This document shows positions 11,539 to 59,606 of a stretch of DNA of 64,000 nucleotides, one piece after another; position 1 is the stretch's first letter, and each line of letters begins with the position of its first letter. The translations under genes were made by a program, and so were the position numbers. Where the stretch lies: contig CAJFCJ010000003.1 in NCBI GenBank assembly GCA_904063045.1, forward strand, positions 1,364,001-1,428,000, read 5' to 3'. The DNA comes from Dimorphilus gyrociliatus (lineage: Eukaryota; Animalia; Annelida). The notes under the pieces are model-generated. The model worked only from the letters and a program-made list of their open reading frames with translations. It was not told where the DNA came from and did not search any database.

Positions 11539-11753
11539 GATTTTAGTAACACATTCGAACATAGAAGGCAATTATAGGTATTGACCAATTTTCATTGTAG
11601 AGCAACCCACTGCTCCCCCTATGGATTTCAAGAAAACAAGACTAAACAAGCCCCGGATGAAATTGCAACTCAATTCAGCAGTTTTCTCAAAATTCTTTAA
11701 AAGGTCGTCAGAGCAGTAGAATTTTCTCAGTTACGAGTTAGCAATTGCCAATA

Positions 11754-14371
<2,618 letters not shown>

Positions 14372-38915: not shown

Positions 38916-41900
38916 GAATTAACAAAAACTACCAGCCAATATGTCAGTGTTTTTATCCATACTGCTCGTAAAAAAAAGCGCATTTGTTTCTTTCTTTAAT
39001 CATTTTTTTTTTAATAATTTATTGCATAAAAACGAAAAATTTATGTTTGAAAACTATTATTAATTTCTCTCTAAGAACAGATTGACAAACTTTAATAATA
39101 ATCAGAATAAAAAAAACCACTAATTATATGATTTATGTATAAAAAGTTGAATAATTTGTTTTTTCTTATCTTATACTATAAAATAGAATCAGTGAAAAAA
39201 ACGTTGATAATTAATAACATCTCATATTTTCATTTTAAGTCGGTCGATATACAAATTGATAAAAAGTAAAAACATTGATTAAATAGATAATATATCAAAT
39301 CAATTTTGAAATTTAATGCGAATAACATCTAGTTATAAATAAATAAGGAATGCTAACGATATCTGTATATACAGAATATATACTAATATATACATATATG
39401 GTATATATATATCCTGTGTATATCTAAAACACTTAAATATATTTTATACGATATACATACTTTCTTTTTAATACAACTGAGAGGTTATTACCCTTTTACT
39501 GACATTATCTATAACGATTTATTTTAGGTTTATTGGTAAGATTTTCAAATTTTCGACATTTTACTAAACTGGTACTTTCCTTGGCAATTATTTCGACTTA
39601 TGTTGAATATAATTGGAAAAAAAACACTGATCTAAGAAGGATGACCTTGTATAACAATTTTATATACCAATAATAATGAACCTATCTTATGAATGATGAA
39701 ACCTTTTCTTCGAACTTTCTAGTCTTGTTTATTTTTGACATCTGCGACATAACAAATCCGATTGATTTGACTGAATTGTAAAAAAGACAGAAGTGAAAGG
39801 TAATGAGTGGAAAATTATAGGAAAGAAATTGATTTTCTATTTCGATATTAGAACAAAGAGAGAACGAATAGAGTTGACTTTTGTTAACTAAAGAGACTAA
39901 AAAATAGTCTTATTTGTATCTGATAAGGTGATTCTATCTGCCAAGCACCAAGTCACGCTCTATAAGCACATGTCTAGCGTTCTATTACTAATTTCTGCAC
40001 ATTTCCTCTTACAAGTTCTTGAGAAGGAAGAGTAAAAATCTTCAATTAAGACTGTCCTCGACCGCTGTAAAAAGTTGACAAATGATAGTAGCATGTATTT
40101 ATATTAAAGTATAATTGGATTGTCTTTATAATTCTAATATTTTTCTTTCTATGTCAAATACTGTAATAAGTATGTTTAAAGAGAACAGTTTATTATAGGA
40201 TATAATAGAAAACTGCAAACTATTACGTATTAACCAATTTAATATGAGAAATAAAAATCTGCTTACAGCATGCAGCACATACAACGTATATACAAACTAT
40301 CCATTTACAATCTTAGCAATTCTGTCTTTTCAGATAACTTTCAAATTCAGGTCAATTCATTTTTTTTCTCTTTTATATTATTCGTCCAACTTTGTTGGTA
40401 CTTTGTGCATCTTCAAAAGACGTTTGGATCTTGTTTTTAGCCAGGTTCTTGTAGGATACCTATCAATCTAATTGGATCTCTTGTAAGTAAATTGTAAGTA
40501 ATCAGTTCGGTAACAATGCCCTTGAAAAATGATTATATGAGAGAATAATATAAGATGATTTGAGAAAGTAAGTCACAAATCTATAAATAGAAGGACGAGT
40601 GAACCCCTTTGTTTTAATATTATTGTTTAACTGTAGATAAATTAAGAATAATAATTAAAAACTAAGATCTGTCAGCTAAACTCATCATTAAATCATCTAG
40701 TAATTATATAAAAGACTACTATTGTACATATTGTATATAGTACAAAAGGAAAACTAGACTTTTTTTGAAGATCGACATATTTGCAGTTAATTTTTCATTA
40801 GAATTTTGAGATAAACATTAATTAGGAGAGTAGTAATGTTGTATTCTCCTCTGTTTTTGTTTAGCTAGAGTAAGCAAGAAAATATAAAATGACCATTGTA
40901 GGAGATATTCTTATGCTTGAAAAGAGGAAGATAAACTATTCGGAAAGGAGTAATAATGCGGTAATACTATGCAACTAGTTTCGATTCCGAACAGGCGATT
41001 TTGGATGAAAAGACCTGTATAAATGTAAATAATTAAAATAGCCGCCTGACATTTCTACTAATTCGGCTAACAACTACTAATCCCTTCTTAAACGAATGTC
41101 AGTCCGGCCTTCTTCTTAAATGGCGCAACTAATAGAAATTGCGTACGGTTTAGACGCTCGTTTGATGTTCTCTCTAATCTTATTCTGAGGCAAAGAGCGA
41201 ACTATAAACAAGATTTTCTTTTTCATCCCAAACAAGGAACATGACGACAGTAGCTGCCTTTCTACAGTAGTTTTCCGCCGTGACTAAGTGACTTTTATAA
41301 AAACGCATTCCTCTATCCTTCAACGAGTAATACTTGTATAAAAAGAATAAAATTGGTCTTACTTACCTTTTCTGTCGACGAAAGGTAATTTTGTAGTTCG
41401 TTTATCCGTCTCAATATCCTATTATGTGGTCAGCTGGACCCTTGTCCATTAGCTATAAATAAGAATCTGTATTTTATCACCAGATTCCAACAATCCGAGC
41501 GTATGAAAAAGAAATAGTAAATATCCCTACTATATAGTATAGAGTAACGCCTAAATTAAGGTACAGAATATAGTTACTATATATATCTATACATTAAAAA
41601 TACATTGTAACTTGTAATGAACTATATAAATAATAATAATTGCAATAAAATACAATCAAAAGGAAAAAAAATACTTTGTCTAACTCTTTTAATTGATGGT
41701 AATTCTAACATGTAAGTCTATTTTTTGAAAGCGTAAATTGCCTATTATTTCTCATGGTAGCGTCATAATAGTTGAATAACAGAGTAAGAATATTCACCCA
41801 ATTTACTCTGTGTTATTATTTAAAGAGCAAGTAACATTTTTTTATTCCACTTAAAAAAAATTTTTTCGTGTTGTTTTTTGTCTGTGTTTTCTTGTATTAT

Positions 41901-41960
41901 CTGGAAAGTGTTTCCTACTCTCCTTAAATGTATATATATAGTACAAATATACTATATATT

Positions 41961-41991
<31 letters not shown>

Positions 41992-42626
41992 ATATATATA
42001 GACGCAGATATATTGCTTACGTAAAGAAGATGAGTAAAAGGTAAATTAATTAATGAACTTAAAAAAAGATTATAAACTATACAATAAAAAAAATATTTTA
42101 TTGAATGAAAAAAAGAAAACAAAGAGAGAAAAAAAAGAAACAAGAGGAAAAAATAATAATAGAATAAACGAAGAGATCTTTTCTCATTCTCCCTTTTTCT
42201 ATTAATAACGTATAATTTATTATTGAAAATAGGAATAATGACAATAATTTTTTGCCTTTAAAGGTATATTAAAACATTTAAAATGTTAAATTGTAACGAT
42301 ACGCTTGATAGCTAAAATTTCTGCTACATCTATTTATGTGAGTGTGTGTGAACCGACAGTTATTTCCAGACTATATAAGAGTTATATTACAAAGCAGCAG
42401 GAAGTGCGTGAAAGCACACGAAAAGAGCGATAAACCTCAGACTTTTTACATAACGTTACCTTTTTACTTCTTTCGTTTAGTGTGAATTAGAAAAGGATTA
42501 AATTAATATTGGATATACAACGAATATATTTTTTACATAGATAAGTTATTCCTATTCATTGATGACTAAAAATATACCGACACGACTATATTGTGTATAA
42601 TAACGGAAAGTACAGTTTTTATTTAG

Positions 42627-42659
<33 letters not shown>

Positions 42660-43161
42660 TGAAGATATTTACATTATAAATACATTGCATATTGCACAGA
42701 ATAAAATGATGACACTCCCTGAAGAGAATTAGAAATTGAAAATCCTTAGTTTTCTCGTAGGAAATGAATATACCTTATGTTAAGATTTATTGATTAGCAT
42801 TATTATAGATTAATGGTAAACATTTATTATGTTCTTGTTTTCATTTCGCCTATTTTTCAAAATGAATGAAATAATAACTACAAAGGATATGCTAAATACC
42901 TGTTTTATTGATAAAAAAAGCGTATTGCTATTCGTATTATAGCTTTTTCATTATGTATATAGTTTTTAAAAAATAATCTAGGCGTTTTGCAAAGATTTCT
43001 GAATATAACTTTCTCTTTTTCATCGACATAAAAGATAGTTAGGAAAGTATATAGGCCTACCTCTATTTATCTGTCGCGTTAGGGGGAAAAATTAATATTT
43101 CTCAACACCCTACTCTCTACCACCAGACGTCGCTTGGAAGACGAGCGTCTCTTACGGAGTT

Positions 43162-44432
43162 ATGGAGCCAACTTACAGCGTACTATTCTATTCGAATTCC
43201 ACTCAAAACTCTACTGAATGGCAAGAAACGCCTGTCTCCGTTTTCTCCGTTGTTGCAGGAATCTTACTAGCTTTTATCATAATTGGAACACTACTGGGCA
43301 ATTGTTTAGTTGTCGTGGCCGTCTGTTCGTTTCCAAAACTGCGAACGACTACAAATTATTTCGTCGTCTCCCTCGCTGTAGCTGATATTACTGTTGCTAT
43401 ACTGGTAATGCCGTATAGTTTGGTACTAGTTGTTCTACAAAGGTGGTTACTCGGATGGTTGTTTTGTTATTTTTGGATATCGTGCGACGTAACCTGCTGC
43501 ACTGCATCTATCCTGCATTTATGTGTCATTTCAGTTGACAGATATTTGGCTATTACAGAGCCGGGACGTGATTTAGGAATATTTAAATTACATAAATAAT
43601 TTTATAATAGGGTTCTTGACTAACATGTAATAGTAGATTAGTGTTGCGTTAAACTAATCGTTATTAAACTAACGATTCCATAAATTAGGTATCTAACTTA
43701 GACTTTATAGAGAATTTATTCCTCAATCTCGTCCATTAGCTCACGTATAAACAGAAAATGTCCAAAAGAAGAGCACTAGCAGGAATAGGAATTGTTTGGA
43801 CGGCCTCTTCAGCAATATCATTTGTGCCAATATATTTAGGTTGGTTTGCTTCAGAAGATTTTGAGCTTTACGTTGATAATCCTGAATGTGGATTAGATGT
43901 CAACCGTCCTTATGCTGTCATATCTTCCTTTACAAGTTTTTATGCGCCTCTGCTCGTTATGGTGGTTGTTTATTCAAAGATCTTCCGTATAGCCAGAGAA
44001 CAGGCTAGAGAAATAGCAAAACTAGAAAGGTTTGGTAATGGAGACAGATTAAGAAAAAAATCAAAAAAAATTAGCAGAGATGCTAAAGCTATAAAAACTT
44101 TGGGTACGTTAATGGGCTTATTTTGTATTTCTTGGCTTCCATTCTTCATAATGTACGTTGTCATGCCGTTTTGCAAGAACTGTCCTATGCCAGATGAAGT
44201 GGAGATGTTTATTACATGGCTGGGATACGCTAATTCTCTGATAAACCCTTGCGTTTATGCTTTCTTAAACAGAGACTTTAGATACGCTTTCGCTACAATA
44301 TTAAGGTGCAAACGATTTTGCGATCGTCGTTCCGACGTAGGACTGGTATTAGAACATCGTCATGTTCGTTTACCAACCTCCGATTGTGCTGCAGAACTTA
44401 TGGAGGAGAATCGAAGAGAAATGTCCTCCTAA
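43162..44432 (+). CDS. Class A biogenic-amine GPCR (D1-like dopamine or beta-adrenergic-like octopamine type); 2 exons, intron 43564-43739 with a GG donor
   Basis: GNCLV, SLAVAD, TM3 Asp (CDVTCCTASILHL), DRY, TM5 SSFTS serines, WLPFF and WLGYANSLINP..Y. The junction AITEP|LTYKQKM aligns without a gap to the amine-receptor ICL2 pattern. Confidence 0.9.
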
Positions 44433-45536
44433 CGCTTATCGCCAAAACCTCCAAAAGGATTATGTGGGAGCCTACGGCGAATTTGGAACTCTTTCTTCTT
44501 TCTGTGTTTTGTACCTCAAAAAAATGGACAATTAGTTTAAGTCTGACAAGTCCTCTTTACCTCGATCTAGAAAAGGTCAGAGACGTTTTGCATTTTAGGA
44601 AAGGTCTATATGACTGACTGCTAAAAGAAGTTTATAAGGAAGAGGAGAAGGATAAGGAACCTACTATCGTTATTAGAGTCAGTACAATCCAAAATCCATA
44701 AATTTATAGTGCGACTTAATTGTTAAGGGAGACGGCTCTTATATTTAACCTTAATAACTACTCGTTTTCTTCTCTCTTTTATTCCTACTTCGTTATACAG
44801 ACTACAGAAAGCATGCATATGTATACATACATCAATTTTTATGTTATATAAAGTTCCATCGTTTATACTAATTGAATAAGCAACTCAAACGAGAGGAAGA
44901 AACTTCTGCAGATTCTCAGGAAACTTTTGCAACGATTATCGTAAAAGTTCATCCTAACTTTTCTTTCAGTTTCCAAATAAAAGAGAGTAAATTTTTTCTT
45001 TTTTTTGGTGTTTTCTAATATGAAAATTTATAAGAAGAAAGAAACGAAATGATCAAAAGTTCTAACAGTCTTTCCTCTTACTTTTGTAACAAGTTACGTC
45101 AATATAACGAAAATCAGGCGTAACAAAGTTATCGGTATCTTTTGAGAGGACGTCATGATGCTCTCGACGAAACACGTCTTCTCACTTGGCTCATCTTGAC
45201 CTAATTAGACCCGTCACTCGATATCTAGGCTCTCGTATGCACGTACGTAATTAGCCTTGTCGAAATTAAATGAAAATACCGCAATACGCCATAACCACAT
45301 TTATAACCGAAATGATTCGATTACAGCCATTGAAATTGTCTAGAAAAAACAAACATTCATTGGAATTAATTATTTATGCATATATGTTTATGTATATAGT
45401 GTATATATTCTATATATATACATAAATAATTTATAGGATAATCAAGCTAGGATCTGTAAAAATTAAGCGCCTTTTTCAAATATCATGTTGCCTCCTCTAC
45501 TTAACAGTTGAGTTTTCATCCGTCAATTAATTGCTT

Positions 45537-45540
<4 letters not shown>

Positions 45541-45567
<27 letters not shown>
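45541..45567. repeat. (GA)n microsatellite
   Basis: About 13 AG units read directly. Confidence 0.9.
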
Positions 45568-45568
<1 letters not shown>

Positions 45569-46880
45569 ATAAATTAAAGTCTCTTACTTTTCTTATCTTC
45601 GTTTGTAATTGTTCGACTGTATAAGTGAATAAAGTTAAGTAGCCTACACTACCAGAAAAATGAAGAAAAATTGAGTCACGTAAACGTTAGTTAATCACGC
45701 GTCGTTAGGAAGCCCGCTTTCGACGCTGTGGATTGTTAGGCCTATCCTAAATAACGTTCGATACAATTTACACAAATAATGACGAATGTTTCTCCTTTCT
45801 CTAATCACTCGGACGGAAGACTATTTGCTCTTTGATCTTCGTTCTCTAGGTTTCTTTTTCGGAATACAACTTTTCTGGAAAAAAGTTCTCATCCGCTAGG
45901 CCTACCTTTTCGGGAATATCCGCTAAAAGCCAGTAGTCGAATGGGAAAACCGATATATGCCCCAGGGATATATATTGGCTTTTTATGAGTGGCGGAAGAG
46001 ATTGGGGAAGGAAAAATTAGATTGAACAGTTTTTTTTCTTAATTTTGCCTCCTTCAACCAACTTGACTAAAGAATTGTTTCATTATTTCTACAAAGGATG
46101 AAATCTGTTCGTATTTCTCTTTTACTGGCTTGTTTACTATAGAAAATATATTGAAAAGCTTCTGGAGGGCAAACTTTGATGAGCAAAATCATTGGACAAA
46201 AAAAAACTGATTATGATGGAGTACAATTTGCTAAACGTTTGCCAATCGAATAAGTAATAGAACGCATGCGTCAATGCCTAAATGAACCATAACTGAACAA
46301 TGAGAAAAGTCATATTCCAATTCTTTTCAGCTTTTTAGTCGTTAATCTAAAAAAAGAAACTCCTCATTATTGCGATTTCAAAATACCATTTAATTAAACA
46401 AAAGTTATCTAGAAAAATGATAGAAAAAGAGAAACAAATATACAAAAAACAAACACCCTGCTGATTAGCACTTACCGATACAAACCATGTCGGAAGCTTA
46501 TTACAATTGCTATTCCACTTAAATAAACGAATTATATACATGCTTATATATAGATAGAAACGGTTAAAAGTTGGTTGCAAGCCGTAAACGAATCTAAAAT
46601 AGTCGATTTATTTATCAAACTGCATTTAATTAAAAGTTAACACTTTTAATCAAAGATTAATAATGACGAAGAACATACCAGGGAGCTTTACTATATATAA
46701 ATATTGCTTAGAATCTGTGGATGCTTACAGGAAGAGTGTACAAAATTGTTAATCTGTAATAATTAAACCTCATTTAATACAAATAATTCATGTTTATTTA
46801 GCTAATGCTTATAATTTGTGTAATTCAGTTTTAATTAAATTTGGAAGATCGAGAAATTAAACCAAGTGCGAACAACTTTA

Positions 46881-48639
46881 CTAATTCACATTAGTCATAG
46901 ATGAATCCGTCAGACTAGGAGTTTTCAAAAGACTCCTTTGTAAGATATTATTATGGGTATTATCGATTGCGTAATCAATCGTGTGCAGCTTGGGTATGAC
47001 GAATGCAGATTGACCGATATTGTAAGGTCTACTATTTTCAACGAAAGAATGAAAGGATGTGTAGACATTCTTTAACTCCTTTTCAACCCTCTTTTTGCTG
47101 TCTTTTACTCTCTCTATCTCTATCTTGGTTTCCTCGGATAGCTGCCTCTCTTTATCCAGGATTTCCTTGAGCCCTACCAACTTTCTATCCATTTCTTCCT
47201 TCAGGCATTTCAGCCTGATTTCCGCAACCGCCTCCTCCTGTACTCTAACTGAAGTGTCTGTCGCCTGCAATTGGTAAAGGTACTCTTCCTCAAGATTTTT
47301 CAATTCTATTAATTTATTTTTTTCAGCCTCTTCTAGTAGCTTCTTTGTATTTTCTTCTGCTGCTCTATACAGGTTAACATAAAGAAGATGCTTGTTAGAT
47401 GGGCCAAAAAAAAGCTTGTTTAATCTTATAAAAAGGCCTATACTTTCTAACTTAATCGTATTTACTTAGCTGCAATTTCGGCTTTCTGGACAGCCGCTTG
47501 CCTTTCTTCTTCTCTTGCTTTTAAAACTGCCTTTTTCAAATCAGCAAGCCATCTGTCATGAAAAAGAGAAAGTTAACGAAAAGTTTTAATTGCTTTCTAT
47601 TTCTTCATTCTAAAGGATTACTTTCTTTTAAAAAAAAAAAGAGAGAAAATTGAAAAAATTGTCTGCAACGCATGCGCAGTAAAAAACTTAATTAAAGTTG
47701 TTGGCTTAAGTGAGAAAATTGAAAACCGTAGGATTTGAACAGAAGTTACAGGAAAATAAGTGGATCAATTCGATCCACTGCATTCGCTATTGGGTTACAA
47801 ATCGAAGCTAACGTTCGATATTAAGTTGCTGTATAAAAATTTCATTGTTCTTTAAACGAATGCACGAATTATAGAATAAAGAGAGTTAAAGAAATCTTTC
47901 CTTCTTAAATGTAAATAAATTTTTATTTTGGAGGAGTTAAATTAACCTTTTATCAGCTTCGGCAACGGCCTCTTTTAACCTTCTTTCCCCATTGACTTTC
48001 TCTTCTTGAACTGCGTCAGAGATGGCTTCTTCTATCCTAGCTTCAGCTCTAGCTACCGCTTCTCTTACCTTGCTGGACTGTAGCTTTTCAACTTTCTTTA
48101 AGAGTTTTTCGTATTCAGCTTTCGTCGACTCAATGGCTTTTTCAACCGCCCTTATACGAATCGTTTCCGCTTCAGCCCAAACGGCTTCTTCTGCAGCTCT
48201 AACGGCATTTTCTCTGGATTCCTCTTCCTCTGCAGTCATTTTCTCTGTTAAACTCTTTCCCAAATCAACAATATCCTTATGTGTAGCGTCTTTAATTCCG
48301 AAAGGGATCCGACTGTGTTCGTAACGTAGTGGAACGCCATCATACACAGTTCTGGGACCAATCGTAGATAACCCAGTTGGTGGGGGTGGGGGAGGTAATT
48401 CAGGTAATTTACCTCCAATTTCTAAAGCAATCTTAGTATTCTCTCTTCTAGGCGTTTTTTTTGACCTCTTTGTATTTTCTCTACCTATACATATCAAAAA
48501 ATTGACAAAGGGTTGATCAGGTCATAATAAAGCAAATATTGGCCTAATTATGTAATTGACAAAGTATAAGATAATTAGATAAGATATTATACTTACTGTA
48601 AACAGGTAAAGTTGACGATCTTCCGACTTTGAGAGGCAT
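46881..48639 (-). CDS. C6orf163: Coiled-coil protein similar to C6orf163, 4 or more exons; true start uncertain
   Basis: THKDIVDLG..AEEAVWAEA..AVEKA resembles human C6orf163 THKDILDIG..AEAEVWAQA..AVEKA, and C-terminal FHSFVEN..GQSAFVIP resembles FQKYIN..GHADFILP. Exons 48597-48639, 47946-48485, 47467-47553 and 46881-47365 (approximate) join by GT-AG. Confidence 0.7.
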
Positions 48640-50697
48640 TTTCTTTTTGGGAGTTTGTTTTCGAAACCGATCCTACCGACTTGTTCGACTATTGATTTTA
48701 GATAATCCAAGAGAGAAAAGCAATAACATTACAATACTTGGCTATTGAGAAAACGATCTACAATCGTTTAAAATGCTACAGTATTTACAATTATATAATA
48801 ATTTACTAAACGGAGGGAGTAGGGAGGTGGCGAATCAACGTGAACAAACCCCAATGTTAGTCTTTCCGGAGAGGAAGGAGCTTAAGCGCAAAAAATATAT
48901 AATAAAATAGGAAAAGAAAAGAAAGTCCTTCAACCTTCAACTCGGTAAAAGAAAAAAAGCCATATAAAAGTATCCAAGTCTGACTTATCTAGACTCCGTA
49001 GCCGGCTGATTGCTTTGATGTTGGCGATATGAAAAAAAAGGCCAGATACGAAAAAATGTATTGGTTTTTTTTAATATTTCTGTGGATTGTTCATATAGGA
49101 TGAACGACCGATTCGTTTATTGACTTTTTATAATGATTTTTTTCTCTATCTAATTCCCTTTATTCTTAATATTCTACCTCTTTCTCTATCCACTCTCCAT
49201 TTTCATCCCATAGTATGCCATCCCAAGGGTTAATCAACCTAATCGTATACCACCAATAGACAGAAATTACAACAGAATTTCTTGGTTTATTCGATAGTTT
49301 CGAAAGAAAATATGAATTGAAAGATGAGGATAAAAAGAGAAATTACTCGAATTAATAGACAAAATATTTCAGACTAAGAGTTTTACTTAATATTTACTTC
49401 ATTTGGTTAATTGAAAGATATCCATATATAAATATCAAGAGACTTTTATAGCATATATACTTTGTGTATCTTAAATAAAGAAATCTATACGAATATATAT
49501 ATATGGTATAAATAAGGTAAATAATTGCATATAATTGTATTTTAATAAATAGAGAATAACTAAAAATTACGTAAAAAGAATCTCTTTGACGAGAATGACT
49601 CCATCTGCTTTGTAATCGGATCTTTGGTTAAACTGCTTAATTATTAGAGCTTTTTTTTTCTAGATTTTATGCATTAATATACTTATTAACTTATCTTCTA
49701 ATAGAATTTCCTCTTATAATTTTAACTATTCCAATAGATTCTGAAAGGCATTGTCCGTTTAATTGGATTATTTATTCGAATTGTCTTTTGAACTAATGGA
49801 ATAAAAACATAAACATATATAAATTTTCTATATATATACTGTATACTGTATATATATATATATAAATATATCTTCTTACGTAAATATCACACAAAAACAA
49901 ACTACTACGGAGAAAATAACAATATGTTATATAAGAATGATAATGCATCAAGTATAGAATGTATTTCTAATTTTTTCAAACTAGATTTCCATTCATACAA
50001 GTTCTTTAAAAATATTTTGTAACCTTCGGGCTTGTCATATCAAGTATTTTTTTTCCAATAGTTATACAGACGGAGAGAATGAAGAAGAAAAGAAAGAATC
50101 CATTATTTCTTCGTCCTTATTTTTCCAGTCGATGTAGGTTGTTTTTCTCTCTTTCGATAATAAATGTGATTCACAATAGTTATGCTTGGAGCGTAAATAA
50201 TAATGCTGGGTTCAGATATGATTTTGAAGGCTCAATATGTACTTCTACTATACTTGTAATAGTAACAAACTGCCATTTCTCCTCTCTTTCTTCTTTCGTC
50301 AATCCTCCTTAGCTGAAAGCGTAATTATATTTCTTCAATGGATGCTTTTTGGAAATGGTGTTGAGTAAGCCGACATTGGAATGCGGAAAGAACGTAACCT
50401 TTGAATCAGGTTTTTTTTCACCATTATTTACTATTTTGAAAACCTACCCATCTGTCTCTTTTCGATAAGAGATTAAAGAATTTCTCTTCTATACTTTAGT
50501 TCCCCTCTTTTAGAAACTGTTTGCCAATTGCAAAACTCCCAACATCTAACCTCTTCAAGTCTTAAGTGTATTAATGGGTGTTGCGTCCCAAAACTAGATC
50601 GAAAGAGAATGTATTGAAAAAAAAAACAATTATCATATTTAAAAGCAGTTATCAACTTGGTAAAGATCATTCCCATAAACTTTTCCAACCTTTTCAT
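48593..50697 (-). other. Chain of short, phase-compatible candidate exons (unannotated gene or 5' extension of C6orf163-like)
   Basis: GT-AG-flanked blocks 50551-50593, 50271-50312, 50068-50184, 49571-49632 and 49178-49238 splice into one stop-free frame. Blocks were hand-picked; no homolog recognised. Confidence 0.35.
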
Positions 50698-58199: not shown

Positions 58200-59606
58200 T
58201 CATACCAAATACGGATTAACTTTTTTCTCGCCCAAAGATGAGTATTGCCCAATGTGCAGAAAAACATTTGGGCTAACTAGTTTTGCTTTCCAATTTTCTC
58301 TCTCCAGAAAGTCGGCTATAGCCTTATCTTTTGGATAAGAGAGGCCACATTTGACATTTTGGAGGAATTGAACAAGGGCCTTTCCACCTGCTCGACTGAA
58401 TAGTAAAGCAGGTGTACAACAGCTTGGTGATTTAACAAACCTGTTCATAATATTCAAGTTAAATAGAAAATCTGTCAATTTCTATTACTTATTAAAAAGA
58501 ATAGATTAATACCTATAAAACTGAGGATGTATCCTTAGAAGTTCCAGTAAATTAGCTCTCCCAATGCACAGTAGCACCAGCATTGAATAAAAAGTCCAAA
58601 ATATGTAAATTGTTTTGATATTTGATTGCTTAAAATATCGCTTAGTTATTAGCGTTATAATCGCAGAAATAAATAAGCCTGCTGCTAGCAGTTCAGGCAA
58701 TCTGTCTGGTTCATAAGCATTCAAATAATTTAATATTCTGTCTGGATGATACAATTTAATAAATGCTAATCTATCATCAGATTTAACAAGTTCTCCCAGC
58801 GAAAAACTAAAGTTATAACGGTATTTAATAGTGTAATCCAGAACAGGTAAGAAGTGATCTAGGGGATAAGCATCATCTTCTGCAAGAAGGACATACTTTG
58901 CAGAAGTTTTTAAAGCTGAATTTAAACAAAACGCATAATCTTCTTTCTCTTTCTCTAAGATGTGTTTCAGAGAAAGGTTAAGGTGTGAAAACCTCGATAT
59001 CACATTCACATAGTTAGATAACATCTGAACATCCTTATAATTTTCCGGGTCCATATCCACGTTACATATAGTTATATTGATATTCAAATTAAAGTCTTTC
59101 TGCTGCAGAGACAGAAAAGTGATTGAAGAAAAATGATATATTTGAATGATATAATATTAAGTTAATACATGAAAAACTAATGACTTTCAATCACTTTCCT
59201 GTTTAGCATCTTGTAGCAATTGCAGATATTTAGCTACCACTTGTGTTAAGTACTTTGGTTCATATTTTCCGATTTGATGATGACTATTTCTTGCAACGGT
59301 TATGATTGTTATACCTACGTCTGTGGACAACCCATGCCTCCCTGTTGCATCTAATAAGCCGTGAAGCTGAAACGAGTTAATATTTTCAAGGAACTTGTAT
59401 GAATCTTTAAGCCTCTTTGTATTCTCATTTTCGAGATCCCTTGACTTTTGGTCAGAAAATATTTGCAGGTGGTAAAAAGAATATTGTAAATTGAACAACA
59501 AAATTGGTAAAATTATTCCAAAGGTTAAGCCGTAAAGCAAAAGACAAAAACGTCTTAAACGCAGATTCCAGATGTACAGCAAAAATAACTCAAGTCTTGT
59601 TAGCAT
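58200..59606 (-). CDS. PGAP4: GPI-GalNAc transferase PGAP4 (TMEM246), 3 exons
   Basis: ITIITVAR..KYLTQVV, CNVD, EKEKEDYAFCL, YVLLAEDDAYP, FIKLYHPDR, CCTPALLF, CGLSYPKD and PNVFLHIGQYSSL match PGAP4. Confidence 0.93.

Follow-up and report, generated by a model that had tools for sequence, protein, structure and literature searches.

A putative GG-AG intron with a conserved end-to-end helix in a biogenic-amine receptor gene of Dimorphilus gyrociliatus

GG donors are extremely rare in animals; among human introns 32 of 222,263 carry one (quoted in PMC5714493). A two-exon gene for a biogenic-amine GPCR in Dimorphilus gyrociliatus raises the question whether an intron with such a donor can be part of a functional animal gene and, if so, how it might be removed. 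The gene lies on the + strand of the window, by which we mean the whole 64-kb stretch of contig CAJFCJ010000003.1 (assembly GCA_904063045.1) that was analysed. The locus comprises the following features.

43162..43563, + strand: coding part of GPCR exon 1, 134 aa, from the N-terminus to TM3, ending DRYLAITEP; absent from the public annotation
43564..43739, + strand: candidate GG-AG intron, 176 nt, phase 0, GGACGT...CCATTAG, with in-frame stops inside
43740..44432, + strand: coding part of GPCR exon 2, 230 aa plus stop, from ICL2 to the C-terminus, beginning LTYKQKM
43758..44432, + strand: public gene model P0001, 224 aa, TM4-TM7 only, with an internal ATG start; the sole gene called here in GCA_904063045.1

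Exon 1 starts with an ATG at 43162 and its 3' end reads GAC AGA TAT TTG GCT ATT ACA GAG CCG, up to 43563, followed by GGACGTGATT. Exon 2 opens with CTC ACG TAT AAA CAG AAA ATG directly after CCATTAG (which ends at 43739) and closes with a stop codon at 44430-44432. The two exons were searched and aligned separately. Exon 1 was found to correspond to positions 1-90 of the Pfam 7tm_1 profile (E 9e-28) and exon 2 to positions 92-260 (E 3e-34), the latter match beginning at exon 2 residue 2. Amine receptors in the PDB match exon 1 at E 1e-29 and exon 2 at E 8e-43, and the best PDB matches of both exons are 5-HT7, beta-adrenergic, 5-HT1A and octopamine receptors. SCDV, DRY, SWLPFF and NPCVY motifs are present in the translations. 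By these matches the gene is identified as a class A (rhodopsin-family) biogenic-amine GPCR, with a predicted 7tm_1 domain across all seven helices.

The initial annotation of this DNA had claimed that a gap-free receptor is obtained only with a GG 5' donor, and the protein comparisons bear this out. On the 7tm_1 profile exon 1 extends to position 90, residue 1 of exon 2 takes position 91 and residue 2 takes position 92. On chain 9lw5_R of the beta-2 adrenergic receptor, exon 1 extends to residue 147 and the third residue of exon 2 is found at residue 150. The junction is uninterrupted in orthologs, reading DRYLAITQPLTYKSRM in Capitella and DRYLAITEPLTYKV in P0007, and the string DRYLAIT(E/Q)PL(T/S)YK runs across it in orthologs from Capitella teleta, a nemertean and other assemblies. 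Since the protein is gap-free only when 43564-43739 is removed, the intron boundaries are set by protein homology. The ambiguity of the boundary amounts to a 1-nt slide only (43563/43738), which yields an identical mRNA and still leaves GG at the 5' end. A G at +1 and a 3'-terminal AG at the sole frame-restoring position, as in a U2-type GG-AG border, were found here and are kept in a diverged relative, which is introduced below.

All frame-keeping GT-AG, GC-AG and AT-AC pairs around the junction were enumerated in both lineages, and no canonical splice alternative common to the two was found among them. The nearby GT at 43568, already considered unusable in the initial annotation, was indeed rejected: its use either meets an in-frame TAG or removes at least 10 residues, and this GT is missing in the relative (GGACGG). 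The mildest alternative of canonical type is a GC donor at 43549, which was rejected because AITEP would be deleted. A U12-type intron (donor /RTATCCTT, branch site like TCCTTAAC) was likewise dismissed, as the donor reads GGACGT and every AT-AC option alters the protein. Two explanations without any intron, or without a GG donor in the RNA, were also considered. Translational bypass as in T4 gene 60 was rejected for want of matching take-off and landing codons, and ADAR editing of the +2 base was rejected since A to I reads as G, not U.

The relative was recognized through the public product P0001, which clusters with P0067; the latter occurs on Logan contigs from the three runs SRR23372229, SRR23372216 and SRR31984834. 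That these contigs are genomic is evident from the intergenic DNA and the adjacent genes that they include; they show synteny with positions 39995-49806 of the window. GG and AG are present at the homologous site in all three independent assemblies, and 3/3 contigs read GAA CCG/GGACGGGATTTAGGAT...CTCGTCCAACAG/CTC ACT, the slashes marking the intron borders. The intron of the relative is located at the same site and measures 184 nt (GGACGG...CCAACAG). Comparison of the coding parts between the two lineages gave the following values.

Exon 1 (402 nt): 40 nucleotide and 2 amino-acid differences, dS 0.50, dN/dS 0.027
Exon 2 (693 nt): 95 nucleotide and 7 amino-acid differences, dS 1.08, dN/dS 0.015

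Judged from this sequence comparison, both exons are under strong purifying selection. It had been proposed that the GG might be a sequencing or assembly error at 43565, where the true base would be T, or that the locus might be a null allele or pseudogene. In its favour, the locus is carried by a single D. gyrociliatus assembly. However, the three independent assemblies of the diverged lineage show GG at the homologous site and dN/dS is ~0.02 in both exons, by which assembly error and null allele are ruled out for practical purposes; a T at +2 would moreover disrupt a G-C pair of the conserved stem described below. The probability left to this proposal is negligible. A very improbable alternative is that the two halves are never joined, and that only the 224-aa public product is made or the halves are separate polypeptides. 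It agrees with the public annotation, which covers 43758-44432 only, with the conservation of the ATG at 43758, and with the protein collection, in which word searches with exon 1 and with exon 2 revealed no spliced or exon-1 product of D. gyrociliatus. Against it stands the low dN/dS of exon 1 itself (0.027), the last five codons of which show synonymous differences only. Similarly, the six exon 2 codons before the ATG at 43758 show two differences from the relative, both of them synonymous. The read-through tails after exon 1, on the other hand, differ in both length and sequence between the lineages, and read-through is impossible because of the 8-nt difference in intron length and the in-frame stops in both introns. 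From this pattern of exon conservation it follows that exon 1 is translated, that translation of exon 2 covers at least the part from 43743 onwards, and that the two can be joined only by intron removal. A GG donor that has been kept in a strongly constrained gene, across lineages near silent-site saturation, appears to be a donor that works and not noise.

Gene predictors reject GG donors, which sufficiently explains the truncated public model. The pipeline of the D. gyrociliatus genome paper gave the truncated 224-aa model at this locus, and the term 'non-canonical' does not occur in that paper (PMC7854359). Predictors restricted to GT and GC donors truncate such genes, leaving the public receptor model without TM1-TM3, and consequently receptor counts, as well as other gene counts, of this genome are affected.

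How, then, could an intron with this donor be recognized? Its two ends were found to be complementary to each other, and the resulting terminal helix consists of the following parts.

43564..43581, + strand: 5' arm of the terminal helix, GGACGTGATTTAGGAATA; begins at intron base 1 and includes the GG donor; 16/18 identical in the relative
43717..43734, + strand: 3' arm of the same helix, TATTCCTCAATCTCGTCC; identical to the relative at 17/18 positions
43735..43739, + strand: unpaired tail of 5 nt with the AG acceptor, ATTAG (AACAG in the relative); the AG is kept, the three preceding bases are not

The arms form an 18-nt inverted repeat (43564-43581 / 43717-43734) of which 16/18 positions are complementary and which spans the intron from +1 to 5 nt before the AG. 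The stem appears in both the minimum-free-energy and the centroid folds of both lineages, with z-scores of -2.7 here and -4.3 in the relative. End pairing of the GPCR intron was calculated at -21.6 kcal/mol for the window and at -22.1 kcal/mol for the relative, the donor being GG in both cases. By comparison, 6000 positions drawn at random from the window with identical geometry give a background of -7.1 +/- 3.2 kcal/mol, and 0.08% of them reach -21.6 kcal/mol; three GT-AG introns of canonical type in the neighbouring gene give values of -4.9 to -7.0 kcal/mol. Between the lineages the arms are identical at 33/36 positions, a conservation that may have ordinary causes; in a neighbouring intron of canonical type the first 13 nt are kept as well. 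The interior is only 45% identical and contains indels, and this 45% equals the prediction from silent-site divergence for unconstrained sequence. The sole change in the outer stem is T to G at +6, which turns a U.U mismatch in the window into a G.U pair in the relative. Pairing is not maintained at the innermost positions, A-U here being U/C in the relative, and no two-sided, pair-keeping (compensatory) change was found in the stem against the one relative compared.

A second copy of the arm sequence, apart from the partner arm, was not found in the 64-kb window at up to 3 mismatches, and a search of the whole 64-kb window against Rfam gave no match. The layout resembles that of 3'-tailed mirtrons, with a 5' arm that starts at the donor, a short tail ahead of the acceptor and conserved arms around a drifting loop. 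A mirtron was nevertheless rejected for the GPCR intron: mirtrons use GT-AG, and a stem of 18 bp enclosing an interior of 135 nt is not a Dicer-sized hairpin.

The initial annotation had pointed to one more non-GT donor in the window, a GA in a gene that it called PGAP4, for which Pfam showed no family.

59103..59198, - strand: GA-AG intron of the so-called PGAP4 gene, CAG/GAAAGT...CTGCAG, 96 nt (99 nt with the next CAG)

The acceptor of this intron is a tandem CAG/CAG, giving a length of either 96 or 99 nt. The GA donor is supported, the relative having CAG/GTAAGT at the same position. In D. gyrociliatus the intron is clamped by a stem of 17 bp (59202-59186 / 59127-59111), the 5' side of which takes in four bases at the exon end and 13 at the intron start. 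Its energy is -23.2 kcal/mol, a value reached by 0/1000 shuffles. In the relative no clamp is found; end pairing amounts to -7.2 kcal/mol and is reached by 521/1000 shuffles (L008:2909-3042). One and the same intron position thus has a GT donor without a helix in the relative and a GA donor with a helix here. The unusual base at +2 takes part in the pairing in both of the clamped introns.

According to the initial annotation the window holds ~2 non-GT donors per ~95 introns, and it was suggested there that the spliceosome of this animal generally tolerates substitutions at +2, possibly as a means by which a weak donor throttles the output of the receptor. The energies do not favour such a general tolerance. 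Both non-GT introns are clamped (-21.6 and -23.2 kcal/mol), whereas the canonical introns and the relative's GT version of the so-called PGAP4 intron remain at background (-5 to -7 kcal/mol), so that tolerance at +2 looks tied to the clamp. The same two introns were recovered in an annotation-free scan of the whole 64 kb for inverted repeats (at least 14/16 complementary, within 450 nt). The scan returned 13 inverted repeats only, and 2/13 are the two non-GT introns that had first been inferred from coding homology.

Three of the other 11 strong inverted repeats lie inside coding sequence, namely 420/587 and 61707/61785, both in continuous ORFs, and 1138/1213. The last of these (16 nt, 14/16, span 76 nt) is situated at the 3' end of a glycosyltransferase-like coding region, just upstream of the end of the frame. 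Further strong inverted repeats are found near short ORFs at 11676-11990 (20-nt arms, span 315 nt) and at 2576-2872 (18-nt arms, span 297 nt).

The reading that we prefer, with a probability of about 0.68, is that this is a functional amine receptor gene with a lineage-specific 176-nt GG-AG intron, the precise removal of which would be carried out by the U2-type spliceosome, with the helix compensating for the missing U at +2. The first 18 nt of the intron would pair with the 3' arm of equal length, ahead of the 5-nt tail, and the splice sites would thereby come to lie side by side at the base of the helix, from where an ordinary U2-type spliceosome could excise the intron precisely. The helix might make up for the absent U at +2 either by holding the two sites close to each other or by determining where cleavage occurs. 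G at -1, +1 and +5, A at +3 and the terminal AG are kept in both lineages, and these bases could serve as the ordinary contacts for U1/U6 and U2AF. On this reading the terminal helix probably helps in intron excision. A helix that buries a 5' splice site normally hinders U1 binding. A helix of -21 kcal/mol should out-compete U1, and the mechanism may therefore differ from the one proposed here.

This competition with U1 leaves room for a U1-independent or non-spliceosomal route, in which removal would be guided by structure and the helix itself would define the cut sites, comparable to the nonconventional introns of euglenids. In those introns, pairing near both ends joins the borders, and a short fixed spacer separates the 3' pairing element from the exon (PMC12501133, PMC11282704). 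In the GPCR intron the helix starts at +1 and hides the donor, its 5-nt 3' spacer is like the N5-6 spacer in the Euglena code (PMC12501133), and the pairing of the +2 base in both clamped introns points in the same direction. The euglenid introns differ, however, in that a pairing of 3 nt (CAG/CTG) at +4..+6 and -8..-6 is combined with arbitrary borders, that their machinery is unknown and that their products are circular (PMC12501133, PMC11282704). The GPCR intron in contrast has an 18-bp stem from +1 and spliceosome-like G...AG ends, and the CAG/CTG motif is absent from it. Moreover, the 3' spacer is not fixed, being 5 nt in the GPCR intron vs 8 nt in the so-called PGAP4 intron, and spliceosomal recognition predicts just what both lineages have kept, a G at +1 and +5, an A at +3 and an AG at the end. 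A structure-guided route is therefore considered unlikely. Rather unlikely, too, is the reading in which the inverted repeat is merely the scar of a mobile element (MITE or introner-like), splicing is independent of the repeat and the spliceosome tolerates any base at +2. The intron has indeed been gained: neither the Capitella gene (L006, 906 nt for 302 aa) nor the P0003 gene (L005, 1212 nt for 403 aa plus stop) is interrupted across the DRY..PLTY junction. The GPCR intron thus looks like a lineage-specific gain that the dinophilid side acquired before the divergence of the two lineages. Terminal inverted repeats that are 16/18 complementary from +1, together with a possible direct repeat, would fit an inserted element. 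The possible direct repeat of 5 nt is seen in the relative, where AACCG before the intron (L002:2794-2798) and AACAG in the intron tail (2978-2982) agree at 4/5 positions and could be the remnant of a target-site duplication; in the window the repeat is weak (AGCCG vs ATTAG, 2/5). Introners with inverted repeats have been described from Amoebophrya (PMC7789003) and from other organisms (PMC9860276). A mere scar is nevertheless not expected to keep its arms at dS 0.5-1.1 beside an interior that has drifted, and no further copy exists within the 64 kb. The so-called PGAP4 intron also argues against it: in the relative the same site has a GT donor and lacks the clamp, and the 3' arm of the clamp pairs with the last four bases of the exon, which would not have come with any inserted element.

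Amoebophrya introners resemble the GPCR intron in their inverted repeats of 8-20 nt at the intron ends, with a predicted hairpin joining the exon boundaries (PMC7789003; for introners in general PMC9860276, PMC11282704), and in their non-GT borders and lineage-specific positions (PMC7789003). They differ in forming repeated families, in being flanked by direct repeats of 3-5 nt and in their highly variable border dinucleotides (PMC7789003). In the GPCR intron, by contrast, the G at +1 and the AG are kept, the presence of a direct repeat is doubtful, and the 64 kb contain no second copy. The so-called PGAP4 case departs further from introners in that it looks evolved in place. Since its clamp includes exon bases and the intron is canonical in the relative, formation in place is indicated, for example by inverted duplication of the junction. 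Gain and in-place formation may both feed the set of clamped introns.

GA and GG donors are known from the copepod Eurytemora affinis, in which they make up 10-12% of the introns (Robertson 2017, PMC5714493). The introns of that copepod share with the present ones a G followed by a non-T at the donor, an A at +3 and a normal AG acceptor, and they too are a recent, lineage-specific gain at which automated gene models break (PMC5714493). The likeness to this type, drawn in the initial annotation, was not sustained in full. The A at +3 is present, but the AG that is obligate at the upstream exon end in E. affinis is replaced by CG here (the exon ends CCG in both lineages), and an end-to-end helix is not reported for the copepod (PMC5714493).

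For the Dimorphilus lineage as a whole, it may tentatively be speculated that a distinct and selectively maintained mode of intron definition exists, in which an end-to-end helix partly replaces the GU and leaves the +2 position free (GA, GG, GC), such introns arising by gain, as for the GPCR, or by conversion of a GT intron in place, as for the so-called PGAP4. We regard this wider proposal as possible, with doubt prevailing. If true, introns defined by structure, as in euglenids and Amoebophrya, would have a parallel in an animal, possibly one that is independent of U1. The link between donor and helix is seen twice in the window and once as a natural contrast, GT without a clamp vs GA with a clamp. 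A non-GT donor with an end-to-end helix offers a concrete model, amenable to mutation, for the replacement of a core splice signal by RNA structure in an animal.

Comparison with the relative also revealed conserved sequence elsewhere around the receptor gene. Upstream of it, three blocks of non-coding appearance (42722-42834, 40921-41493 and 40397-40575) are 91-94% identical to the relative, vs a silent-site identity of ~45-60%. From their sequence, these blocks may be regulatory elements or unannotated exons. In the neighbouring gene on the minus strand, a 394-nt intron contains long conserved blocks at about 47640-47830, a stretch without a match in Rfam. The intron adjoining it, a canonical GT-AG intron of 101 nt (47365-47465), is ~90% identical to the relative, which is above the identity of its flanking exons.
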